A stretch of DNA of 64,000 nucleotides from the sequence record LR756500.1; one strand, 5' to 3'. The position numbers and the translations under genes are program-made. The notes below the pieces were generated by a model. The model did not search any database. It saw only the letters and a program-made list of their open reading frames with translations, and had not been told where the DNA came from. Positions 2,024 through 56,880 of the stretch are shown one piece after another (positions within the stretch are counted from its first letter, which is position 1; each line of letters starts with the position of its first letter).

Positions 2024-2106
2024 TCGAGTTACAAGGATTCGAACCTAAAACTAGATTAATTACTTCTAGTACCACCCTTAATCGTTTTTGGATAAAGGTT
2101 AACTCG
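2024..2106 (-). ncRNA. Atypical or degenerate tRNA-like element
   Basis: 7-bp acceptor CGAGTTA/TAACTCG, T arm with TTCGAAT, CTAGA/TCTAG stem with 9-nt loop, oversized D-like loop. Confidence 0.5.
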
Positions 2107-32141: not shown

Positions 32142-32511
32142 ATTTATTTTTTATGACTATCTGGAATTATATTATATGCTTTCATTTCAAAAGGATATAA
32201 CCCTATAAACTCCATTTCATTAGGAATACATTTTTGAATTTCAATTGCTTCATCATCATTATGGCATGCTGCTAAACATACTAATCTTATTGCTTCTGTT
32301 ATATCATCTTCTGATTTAACAATATCACTTAAATGTTTACCTAATAAAGTTTTTACAATTTCTTTTGCTTTAATTAATTCCATTTTCAAAATTTCAAATA
32401 ACATGTAAATTTAATAAATTAGTTTTAATTTAAAAAATTTAGTTTAAAAATATACCGGTTTAATGTAAGGAAGGGGTCTAAATAATAAAGATAACCGGTA
32501 TATTTTTAGAG

Positions 32512-32921
32512 TGGAGCTGCAGGGGTTTGAACCCTGGTCCGTCGAAAGAACTATTAAAATTTCTACATGCTTAGTAACTTTTATCTTTTAATTATTTTAA
32601 TGGTAAGTTACATCCTAATAAAATACTTAGTTGTTATTTTTCGATTAAATATTTCAACTTATATTTAACTTATTTAAGTTCAGTTATGCCATAAAATTAA
32701 AGTACTTAAAACACTTTAAAGTATGACAGCAAATTTAAATACCTAGTATTCAATTTTGCAAGAGTGACTATTAAACAGTACTACCCGTTAAGCTGCCATT
32801 CTCATTTCAGCATTGTTGCCATTTATTATTTGTTATTCATTTCTGTTTAAAGAGAAAAATAAACAAATTCTCTGCATGCTTAATTAACAATTTACTAACA
32901 CGTCAATTCCATGTCAGCCCC
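32512..32921 (-). ncRNA. ssrA: tmRNA; tag ORF 32788-32820 reads (A)GNNAEMRMAA*
   Basis: GGGGCTG/CAGCTCC acceptor with G3:U70, GGAATTGAC 5' motif, T arm, tag ending AA-stop. Confidence 0.92.
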
Positions 32922-46369: not shown

Positions 46370-46506
46370 TGGCGGGGGAATTCGGGATCGAACCGAAACT
46401 GAATGTTTTCAACACATTTGCTCTACCAATTAAGCTTTTATACTGTAATAACTTAGAGTTTCTTTTCAGACTAATTTTAAAGTTATAGATGTAAATCTAT
46501 TCCCCC
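46370..46506 (-). tRNA. tRNA(UGA) in a class I body, interrupted by ~62-nt element (about 46436-46497) after position 9
   Basis: GGGGGAA-TA|insert|GCTT-AATTGGTA-GAGC-A-AATGT-GTTGAAA-ACATT; G73 plus CCA. Confidence 0.78.
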
Positions 46507-46672: not shown

Positions 46673-47662
46673 TTATTGCACATTAAATCCTATATTTCCT
46701 TTAGTTCCTAATTGACCATTTGCTTTTAACTTTCCATTCATCATTGATTTTATTTCATTAACAGCATCTTTAAAATCATATCCTAAAACAAATACAGATA
46801 AAAGAAGTTCTTTTAAATGATCTAAAGTAAATCCTTCGGATACTTTAACCCATTCATTTAAATTAATATTTTTTAATTCTTCTATACTTAATTTTTTTTC
46901 TATATAATATTTTCGTACTTCTTTAGAAGGTAATCCTATTTCATATCTTCTATCAAATCTTGAAGGTCTATTAGCTATTCTTTCTTCTAATTTTTCTTGA
47001 TAGTTTGTAGTTGCAATAGTTATAATATTATCTAACTTATTACTTCCATCTAATATTTGTAAAAGTTTTGTTAACAACGCTTTATCAACATTAATAAAAT
47101 TATCGATATCTTCTAATATAAGAATAATTTTTCTATCTGGTTCTATTTCTCGTAAAGGAACCATTATTTTATTAAAGTCGTATATGTGATCAGGTTGAGT
47201 TATATTGATTATAATACCTTTATGATCGTTAATTAAATTTTCACTTACTAATTGAATTAAAGAAGTTTTTCCACAACCTGGATGTCCATATAATATAATT
47301 CCACGTTTATAAATAAATGAATGATTATTATATTTGTTTTGACTTGTCCAGAATTTTTTAATATCTTCTAAAATCAATTCAAAATTATTATCTGGCAATC
47401 TAAGTATTTCTTCTGTTATAATATTTCTTTTTCTTAAGAAGAATTCATCTCTTCTAGGATCATATTCTAACTCATAAAATCCGCTTGGTAATTTTTCTTC
47501 GGTTTTTCCAGTTGGATAAAAAGCATTTCCTATTACACTCCATTGTACAACACCACTTTTATATTCAACACCATCATCATCAATATTAATTTCAGAAATA
47601 TTAATGTCTTCTTCATCTCCTAAAATATCACTTAAAGATATTCTTTTATTTTTGCTGCCCAT
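46673..47662 (-). CDS. AAA+ ATPase
   Basis: GHPGCGKT, LILEDID, TTNY, NRPSRFD. Confidence 0.85.
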   Translation of the reverse strand: MGSKNKRISLSDILGDEEDINISEINIDDDGVEYKSGVVQWSVIGNAFYPTGKTEEKLPSGFYELEYDPRRDEFFLRKRNIITEEILRLPDNNFELILEDIKKFWTSQNKYNNHSFIYKRGIILYGHPGCGKTSLIQLVSENLINDHKGIIINITQPDHIYDFNKIMVPLREIEPDRKIILILEDIDNFINVDKALLTKLLQILDGSNKLDNIITIATTNYQEKLEERIANRPSRFDRRYEIGLPSKEVRKYYIEKKLSIEELKNINLNEWVKVSEGFTLDHLKELLLSVFVLGYDFKDAVNEIKSMMNGKLKANGQLGTKGNIGFNVQ

Positions 47663-47710
47663 CCCATATAATTTAAAATTTAACAGTAATTATATGGGAT
47701 GGGCAGCAAA
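47651..47710. repeat. Perfect 23-bp inverted repeat covering the AAA+ ATPase start codon
   Basis: tttgctgcccatcccatataatt / aattatatgggatgggcagcaaa with a 14-nt loop. Confidence 0.92.
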
Positions 47711-47721
47711 TAGTTTCGTAA

Positions 47722-48591
47722 TTATATAGTAATAATATTTAAAATCCTATTAGTTTCTAGTGCAATTTTAGCTGTGTCTTGACCTCTAAATGATTCAGTA
47801 TAGCAATTATAAGCGTTTAAAGCAGATACTTGAAAATCATCCTTTTTATTATAAAGAATTAATTCAGGTCTAAATAAATAAGTATTCATTGAACTACTTA
47901 TAGTATCTAATTTATCGGTTTCAGATGAAATTAAATTTTGAGCTAATTTTCTAGCTAATGATATTTTCGATGTTTGCATTTCTTTTTTGCTTTCATCATA
48001 TATAAGACCTTTAACTATATCATGAAATGATACCATTTTTCCATTAAGATTAGATATAATTTCTAATTGTTTATCAATTATAATTCCAAATCTTTTTAAT
48101 TTATCACTAAATGATTCTATTTTTTTAGAAAGTGAATTATGAAAATGTTTTGATTTAATTGAAGCATTTTCTCCTGGAACAGCAGCAACCATTCCATTAG
48201 CACAAACTAATCTTAATAAACCAATATTAATTTGAAGAGATTTCATTCTATTTGATGAATTAAGTAAACTTAGCATTTTAAAATATTTTTCTCCATTAAC
48301 ATCTACTTCATCCCCAAATATTCTTAATTCTTGAATTCCTCTATTTATATCCATACGATATCTTACAGGTTTAAAATAATTATCTATTTTACTAACAATA
48401 CTTTTTGTGAAATCTGGAAAATCAAATGCATAATATCTAGTCGAAACTTCTTGTTCATGTACAAGTTTATCATAATAAAATGTAGAAACTAAATTATTTT
48501 TTTTATCAATTCTAAGATGATCTAAATTTTCAAAAATCTTTTTTTCATCAAAAGGTACTGCTGTCTTAATATAATCTGTAGCGAAACTCAT
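47722..48591 (-). CDS. DUF932-like protein
   Basis: LLNSSN...LQINIGLLRLVCANG. Confidence 0.5.
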   Translation of the reverse strand: MSFATDYIKTAVPFDEKKIFENLDHLRIDKKNNLVSTFYYDKLVHEQEVSTRYYAFDFPDFTKSIVSKIDNYFKPVRYRMDINRGIQELRIFGDEVDVNGEKYFKMLSLLNSSNRMKSLQINIGLLRLVCANGMVAAVPGENASIKSKHFHNSLSKKIESFSDKLKRFGIIIDKQLEIISNLNGKMVSFHDIVKGLIYDESKKEMQTSKISLARKLAQNLISSETDKLDTISSSMNTYLFRPELILYNKKDDFQVSALNAYNCYTESFRGQDTAKIALETNRILNIITI

Positions 48592-48652
48592 AACTAAATT
48601 TTTTAAATTTCTAATAAGTAAATATAATAAAAATGTTTTAATTAAAAATTTG

Positions 48653-48720
48653 TAGGACTAGTGGGAGCTGAACCCACGTTATCGGTTTTAGAGACCGATT
48701 TCTAACCACTAGATAGTCCC
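48653..48720 (-). tRNA. Amber suppressor tRNA(CUA) with tRNA-Pyl-like geometry
   Basis: GGGACTA / TCTA-GTGGT-TAGA / ATCGGT-CTCTAAA-ACCGAT / AAC / GTGGG-TTCAGCT-CCCAC / TAGTCCT-A; 68 nt. Confidence 0.8.
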
Positions 48721-52243: not shown

Positions 52244-52314
52244 AGGGCCTAGAGGGATTCAAACCCCCGTAGTCAGCTTTGCAGGCTGCGACCTAATCAC
52301 TCGGACATAGGCCC
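52244..52314 (-). tRNA. tRNA-Cys(GCA)
   Basis: CAGC-CTGCAAA-GCTG, U73. Confidence 0.88.
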
Positions 52315-56367: not shown

Positions 56368-56444
56368 TCCGCTAAGATGGATTTGAACCAGCATGTAACC
56401 AATTAACCTTTCAACCGGGTATCAGCCGGAGGGTATATTAGCGG
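56368..56444 (-). tRNA. tRNA-Ile(GAU)-like RNA with non-canonical arm order
   Basis: CCGCTAA/TTAGCGG acceptor, CCGG-CTGATAC-CCGG arm only 8 nt from the acceptor, D-loop-like AATTGGTTA placed 3' of it. Confidence 0.6.
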
Positions 56445-56455
56445 TTTATAATTTG

Positions 56456-56526
56456 CAGATCTACAAAGATTCGAACTCTGAAAGACGGGTCTGGAATCCG
56501 TCGTGTTACCATTACACTATAGACCT
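56456..56526 (-). tRNA. tRNA-Trp(CCA)
   Basis: ACGGA-TTCCAGA-CCCGT, G73. Confidence 0.85.
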
Positions 56527-56537
56527 ATTTAAATTCG

Positions 56538-56613
56538 TGGGAACTGAGAGATTTGAACTCCCGGCCTTAATTTTGTAAGAATTCTGCTCTAAACCAAACT
56601 GAGCTAAGCTCCC
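56538..56613 (-). tRNA. tRNA-Val(UAC)
   Basis: Loop CTTACAA, GGGAGCT acceptor, A73. Confidence 0.88.
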
Positions 56614-56632
56614 ATTTACACCTAAACTTTTG

Positions 56633-56716
56633 TACTACGTATGGGATTCGAACCCATGAGTTGTTTCCAACACAACAGTGAAAGTGTTGCGACCTAAACC
56701 TCTAGTCGAACGTAGC
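56633..56716 (-). tRNA. tRNA-Glu(UUC) with long variable arm
   Basis: CAACA-CTTTCAC-TGTTG then GTTG-GAAA-CAAC. Confidence 0.85.
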
Positions 56717-56738
56717 ATTTAAATTTGGGTGGAAGATG

Positions 56739-56822
56739 GGTACCTGATAGGATTCGAACCTACGATGTTTCTAATGTATAGAGCCACAATCTATTGCCTT
56801 CGGCCGCTAGGCTACAGATACC
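56739..56822 (-). tRNA. tRNA-His(GUG) with 14-nt variable region
   Basis: G-1:C73, ATAGA-TTGTGGC-TCTAT. Confidence 0.88.
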
Positions 56823-56845: not shown

Positions 56846-56880
56846 AATAAAAAGGTTCAAATCTTGCGATTTGAACCTTT
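56846..56880 (-). terminator. Intrinsic terminator of attenuator 3
   Basis: AAAGGTTCAAATC-GCAA-GATTTGAACCTTT then T-rich; boxA-like GTTCTTTGAA at 56834-56843. Confidence 0.85.

Follow-up and report, generated by a model that had tools for sequence, protein, structure and literature searches.

The region analysed, hereafter the window, is a 64,000-nt stretch at positions 324729-388728 of a single-contig virus record of 429,198 bp, with 24% G+C and rated 96% complete, which is identical over the tested stretch to GenBank LR756500.1 ('uncultured phage') and occurs in groundwater metagenome runs. All tRNA genes are on the minus strand. At the end of a His-Glu-Val-Trp tRNA array, and 10 nt after tRNA-Trp, lies a 77-nt element with a 7-bp acceptor stem, a T arm and an anticodon arm with GAU (Table 1). 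Only 8 nt separate its acceptor stem from the anticodon arm, whereas 22 nt, containing AAUUGGUUA, lie between the anticodon stem and the T stem. These features agree in each point with the original prediction of a tRNA-Ile(GAU) with swapped arm order, in which ACC and GGU can extend the anticodon helix.

Table 1. Features of the rewired tRNA-Ile(GAU) element, of other elements in the window, and of the rewired tRNAs of Streptomyces phage Mildred21
Feature	Position	Strand	Description
Acceptor stem, 5' strand	56438-56444	-	CCGCUAA, RNA positions 1-7; pairs with 56369-56375
Connector	56436-56437	-	U8 A9
D-stem equivalent, positions 22-25	56432-56435	-	UACC, directly after U8 A9 and before the anticodon arm; pairs with GGUU at 56405-56408
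C26 and anticodon arm	56414-56431	-	C26; U27.U43 mismatch; 4-bp stem CCGG/CCGG; loop CUGAUAC; anticodon GAU at 56421-56423, flanked by U33 and A37
Linker	56409-56413	-	U44 and GAAA
D-stem equivalent, positions 10-13	56405-56408	-	GGUU, after the anticodon arm
D-loop equivalent	56393-56404	-	AAUUGGUUACA (A14, A15, G18 G19, U20, A21), followed by U48
T arm	56376-56392	-	GCUGG UUCAAAU CCAUC; one C.U mismatch in the stem
Acceptor stem, 3' strand, and discriminator	56368-56375	-	UUAGCGG and A73; CCA not encoded
tRNA array	56455-56821	-	His, Glu, Val, Trp
tRNA-Glu	56632-56716	-	85 nt; long variable arm that forms a hairpin, GUUG-GAAA-CAAC
tRNA-His	56738-56821	-	84 nt; variable region of about 14 nt
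Terminator-like hairpin	56851-56880	-	Precedes the array
tRNA-Cys(GCA)	52244-52314	-	Found by Rfam (46.6 bits), missed by ARAGORN
tRNA with anticodon CUA	48652-48720	-	Amber suppressor, labelled Pyl by ARAGORN; D-stem positions do not pair in the Rfam alignment
Hairpin	47631-47722		Near-perfect, about 25 bp; draws spurious microRNA-family hits on both strands
tRNA-like element	46379-46439	-	38.7 bits in Rfam over model positions 6-65 only; clean D, anticodon (loop GUUGAAA) and T arms; flanks cannot form an acceptor stem; not called by ARAGORN
tmRNA	32509-32921	-	Phage-encoded; tag peptide GNNAEMRMAA
tRNA-like element	2024-2106	-	Directly 3' of tRNA-Pro; 7-bp acceptor (CGAGUUA/UAACUCG), T loop UUCGAAU, interior with an ACCUU...AAGGGU helix and a 6-bp hairpin with a 9-nt loop; 16 bits in Rfam tRNA, 14 bits with the family model
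Four rewired tRNAs of Mildred21 (NC_042008.1)	73703-73779, 94857-94933, 91367-91442 and 86379-86453		Ile(GAU) and Arg(ACG), unannotated; Arg(UCG), annotated tRNA-Phe(gaa); divergent Arg(UCU), annotated tRNA-OTHER

Detection by standard tRNA searches
ARAGORN did not call the element either in the window or in the whole genome, and a search with Rfam at its gathering score found nothing at the site. When Rfam was run by E-value, the tRNA model scored 22.5 bits, below the gathering score of 29, and the element was aligned as a tRNA lacking a D arm, with 4 nt in its place and an 18-nt insertion before the T arm. Thus, the expectation that tRNA finders may miss this gene was confirmed. No other GAU tRNA exists in the window or in the genome, which encodes tRNAs for all other 19 amino acids, counting tRNA-Cys, found only by Rfam. 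Long variable regions, as observed in tRNA-Glu and tRNA-His of the adjacent array, are not expected in these isotypes. With respect to the CUA tRNA, only 17 of 311 long ORFs end in TAG, against 266 in TAA.

The element belongs to a widespread family
A sensitive BLAST search against deposited phages matched the element in Streptomyces phages with 83% identity over 59 nt, at an unannotated site. The copy of phage Mildred21 reads UGGGGCG UA UACCCU CUGU CUGAUAA ACAG UUGAAAGGUUAAGUGGUCACAU GUGGG UUCAACU CCCAC CGUCCCA A, so that all three ordinary stems differ with compensation while both odd linkers are the same; this copy scores 30.3 bits with the Rfam tRNA model. Pattern scans of IMG/VR recovered many more members. 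An initial pattern, CCGGCTGATACCCGG, was too unspecific. A pattern that fixed only the 5' linker and the anticodon loop returned about 45 distinct true members, and all but one degenerate copy carried Y-N-GAAAGGUUA on the 3' side, despite the fact that this side was free. The counts obtained from these scans, which were limited to about 120 loci, are samples and not totals.

An alignment of 88 distinct members gave 90.5% paired cells against 60.6% in shuffles, with a covariation score of 0.78 against 0.18 in shuffles (0 of 500 reach it) and 0.10-0.13 when partners were slid. Double compensatory changes occur in 7 of 7 acceptor pairs, where 99.7% of cells are paired, in 4 of 4 anticodon-stem pairs and in 4 of 5 T-stem pairs, G53-C61 being invariant. 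A covariance model built from this alignment scored the window copy 91.5 bits, while no canonical tRNA of the genome scored above 26.5. U8 A9 is invariant in the alignment, C26, U27 and U43 are nearly invariant, and N44 varies freely. It must be taken into account that the invariance of UA, CU, GAAA, A14 and UUC is partly built into the retrieval patterns; however, GAAA and GGUUA were recovered with patterns that did not fix them, and U8 A9 was also recovered by a descriptor scan that fixed no linker sequence. This same scan found more divergent subtypes of the short-5'-linker architecture, with other linkers (GAGAAAGCUAAUGG; UCAUUAACAAGGUAAUUGG; ...AACUGUAAUUGG... with a GUUGAAAAU tail), whose anticodons are again Ile, Arg or CAU.

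Members occur in hundreds of viral contigs, with IMG/VR contigs ranging from a few kb to more than 450 kb, in about 80 Streptomyces phage records, in Microbacterium phages of about 190 kb and in a crAss-like phage, whose copy has anticodon UAU and D stem UCCC/GGGU. Among 185,579 bacterial and archaeal species genomes there were only 15 pattern hits, of which 12 are true members, all on contigs of metagenome-assembled genomes; the four of these inspected with ARAGORN carry phage-like tRNA arrays. The hits in Nostoc, Lyngbya and Formimonas are chance matches. The class looks phage-specific.

A D stem formed around the anticodon arm
The 5' linker UACC sits exactly where positions 10-13 would be, and its complement GGU(U) lies after the anticodon arm, directly before an A-R-N-N-G-G sequence that looks like a D loop. 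Since both strands were invariant in the first alignment, partly because the patterns fixed them, we searched with a non-consensus base fixed on the 5' strand and the 3' strand left free, and considered the distinct sequences with intact acceptor, anticodon and T stems. At position 23, C was found with G at position 12 in 73 sequences, U with A in 5 and G with C in 4 (82/82 paired). At position 24, U was found with A at position 11 in 69 and with G in 2, G with C in 4 and A with U in 3 (78/78 paired). At position 25, G was found with C at position 10 in 8, U with A in 7 and with G in 1, and A with U in 5 (21/21 paired). Thus, the partner was complementary in 181 of 181 distinct sequences. Over all fetched loci, the 77-nt class has 259 distinct sequences with 17 strand combinations, and none has a broken pair at these three positions, whereas the outer 22-13 position is U.U in 255. 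A set of 61 sequences stratified by D-stem type gave the same picture, with a covariation score of 0.91 against 0.21.

The segment following this helix behaves as a D loop. Position 15 covaries with position 48, just before the T stem (A-U 116, G-C 43, few others), which is the Levitt pair of ordinary tRNAs. Moreover, A14 and G18 G19 are kept, and an invariant A precedes position 48.

Single-sequence folding of the window copy gave as minimum-energy structure an alternative hairpin (CCGGUUGA/UUAAUUGG) at -22.3 kcal/mol, against -17.6 kcal/mol for the rewired cloverleaf. This was not treated as decisive, because N44 varies without compensation and the family covariation supports the cloverleaf-like fold. 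RNAalifold did not find by itself the register 11-39, 12-38, 13-37 (RNA positions) and proposed 13-38, 14-37, 15-36 instead. This register was rejected, since it cannot account for the covariation of positions 23, 24 and 25 with 12, 11 and 10, and in the UCCG/CGGU variants it would put G opposite G.

Isotypes and identity elements
Only isoleucine-type and arginine-type anticodons were found, in scans whose patterns left the anticodon free or nearly free. In the 77-nt class they are UAU (134), GAU (74), ACG (21), UCU (19), CAU (5), CCU (4), UCG (1) and GCG (1). A metagenome-wide pattern with G or U at anticodon position 35, for which there was no positive control, gave 10 hits, none of them tRNA-like.

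The bacterial identity sets are A20, C35, U/G36 and A/G/U73 for Arg, and A73, U12-A23, U20 and the anticodon loop for Ile (PMC9976931), and in this family these elements follow the anticodon. The base after G18 G19 is U in 127 of 130 Ile-type members and A in 45 of 49 Arg-type members, and the discriminator is A in 130 of 130 Ile-type members, whereas in Arg-type members it is G (27), A (14) or U (8). This is what selection for charging by IleRS and ArgRS predicts, and it also argues that the D loop is displayed where these enzymes expect it. The window copy has G34 A35 U36 A37, A73, U12-A23 and U20; C4-G69 is also present, and A38 is C in this copy.

In the window genome, Ile is 10.1% and AUU 5.0% of codons in long ORFs, AUU being the sixth commonest codon. 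The phage has no IleRS-family gene (PF00133), so a host enzyme would have to charge the tRNA. In Mildred21, Arg(ACG), Arg(UCG) and the divergent Arg(UCU) exist only in rewired form, whereas a canonical tRNA-Ile(GAU) coexists with the rewired one, which is there redundant for decoding. In phage EGole (MK494112.1) the Ile copy is annotated tRNA-Leu. Members sit in tRNA arrays, and some encode CCA. Regarding expression, no RNA run with the window locus was found, and the runs labelled RNA that contain the Mildred21 locus are probably DNA; they showed only related phages carrying the same element with other flanks, and so say nothing on transcription.

Discussion
According to these data it is likely that the element is a phage-encoded tRNA-Ile(GAU) of a non-cloverleaf class that appears to be undescribed. 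In standard numbering the order is 1-7, U8, A9, [22-25], C26, [27-43], N44, GAAA, [10-13], [14-21], 48, T arm, 66-72, 73, so that block 10-21 (5' strand of the D stem plus the D loop) and block 22-47 (3' strand of the D stem, anticodon arm and variable nucleotides) have changed places. Covariation at all three pairs proves that the D stem still forms (A23-U12, C24-G11, C25-G10), but it now encloses the anticodon arm, and D stem and anticodon stem form one long helix interrupted by C26/N44 and a GAAA bulge. The comparative data are decisive for the structural part of the original prediction, which did not foresee that the element is one member of a large class covering Ile and Arg. The proposal that it is functional is supported only indirectly, by the identity elements, by its location in a tRNA array and by the fact that it fills the single gap in the tRNA set of the phage, in the absence of expression or charging data.

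It is inferred that the RNA can adopt the usual L shape with the usual core layers. The three new junctions (9 to 22, 47 to 10 and 21 to 48) join nucleotides that lie close together in a canonical tRNA core; for example, A21 lies in the 8-14 layer and position 48 in the adjacent 15-48 layer. The D stem and anticodon stem can stack as in any tRNA, with C26/N44 and U27.U43 at the joint. This model is reasoned from established tRNA core geometry and was not computed, but an L shape with a normal elbow is plausible. We further infer that the RNA is processed like its neighbours in the array, receives CCA from a nucleotidyltransferase, is charged by the host IleRS through G34 A35 U36 A37, A73, U12-A23 and U20, and reads AUU and AUC, which are 5.3% of the codons of the phage.

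A non-decoding role cannot be excluded, although we consider it unlikely. The RNA could be a decoy or sponge for a host tRNA-targeting defence (anticodon nucleases, tRNA-acetylating toxins) or for a tRNA-modifying enzyme specific to Ile and Arg tRNAs, or a regulatory tRNA mimic. The so far unexplained restriction to Ile and Arg anticodons among about 400 distinct members would fit such a role, as would the coexistence with a canonical tRNA-Ile(GAU) in Mildred21, a phage that also carries RNA ligase, polynucleotide kinase, a Ro-like protein and a CCA-adding enzyme, which points to conflict over tRNAs. However, a decoy for an anticodon nuclease would not need A73, A20 or U20, a perfect acceptor stem or the 15-48 pair to follow the synthetase rules, yet they do; moreover, the rewired form is the only GAU tRNA of an otherwise complete set in the window genome and the only form of three arginine isoacceptors in Mildred21.

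The remaining alternatives are very improbable. A tRNA without a D arm and with a long unpaired variable loop is suggested by the Rfam alignment and by the failure of RNAalifold to find the rewired register, but it is contradicted by the covariation of the three D-stem pairs, which show every Watson-Crick combination. A decayed pseudogene or a chance match in AT-rich DNA could be suspected from the low Rfam score, the silence of ARAGORN, the mismatch in the T stem and the differing minimum-energy fold; nevertheless, the architecture is conserved across phages of Actinomycetota hosts, crAss-like phages and groundwater huge phages, with compensatory changes in every helix. Finally, the gene might be a rearranged precursor turned into a canonical cloverleaf by cleavage and religation, since permuted tRNA genes appear to exist in a red alga and some host phages encode RNA ligase and polynucleotide kinase. 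However, the 5' and 3' ends are already in the normal place, so circular permutation cannot restore the order, and two precise internal cuts and two ligations would be needed. No bulge-helix-bulge or intron-like motif was seen by inspection, and the junction nucleotides (A9, GAAA, CA before position 48) are conserved as if part of the mature RNA.

It is rather more probable than not that phages of many lineages use a natural topological isomer of tRNA, with the D-stem strands swapped around the anticodon arm, as working isoleucine and arginine adaptors on bacterial ribosomes. These would be the first non-cloverleaf tRNAs of bacterial-type translation, and phage tRNA repertoires would be systematically under-counted. 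The restriction to Ile and Arg may reflect escape from, or exploitation of, a host factor that reads the D-arm region of just these tRNAs, and its explanation may lead to an unknown host-phage conflict over these tRNAs. Such a class, present in cultivable Streptomyces and Microbacterium phages, would show which parts of tRNA connectivity RNase P, the CCA enzyme, IleRS and ArgRS, EF-Tu and the ribosome really require, and would offer a ready-made scaffold for orthogonal tRNAs. Rfam has no family for it, deposited phage genomes leave these genes blank or mislabel them, which changes conclusions about which codons phages supply for themselves, and no description was found in the literature searched, including two reviews of non-canonical tRNAs but not subscription-only papers.

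Compared with canonical bacterial and phage tRNA-Ile(GAU) (RF00005), the element shares the 7-bp acceptor stem, the T arm with UUCRANY, the 7-nt anticodon loop with U33 and A37, A73, the bases U8, A14, R15 and Y48, G18 G19 and A21, the U12-A23 pair and the location in a tRNA array. It differs in that the D stem is not a local hairpin, no separate variable loop joins position 43 to 49, a GAAA bulge is added and the anticodon stem has 4 Watson-Crick pairs plus U.U. D-armless mitochondrial tRNAs (mammalian mt tRNA-Ser(AGY), nematode and mite tRNAs) also have only a short connector between the acceptor and anticodon helices and an extended anticodon-side helix, and are missed by standard finders. 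However, those tRNAs have lost the D loop and its contacts and need adapted factors, whereas here a full D loop with GG, the 15-48 pair and a 3-bp D stem are kept in another order, in a setting of bacterial-type translation. In the permuted and split tRNA genes of Cyanidioschyzon merolae and Nanoarchaeum the order of segments also differs from that of the cloverleaf, but there the ends are permuted or the halves are separate and processing restores a canonical tRNA, while here the swap is internal and the mature RNA itself should have the new topology. Type II tRNAs with a long variable arm, and allo-tRNAs with 8/4 or 9/3 acceptor and T stems (PMC5389517), natural non-standard tRNAs found partly in phages, likewise have a long segment between the anticodon stem and the T stem. 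In these, the extra segment forms its own hairpin and a normal D arm is present, whereas in the element described here the segment supplies one D-stem strand and the D loop, and the acceptor/T geometry is the standard 7/5.
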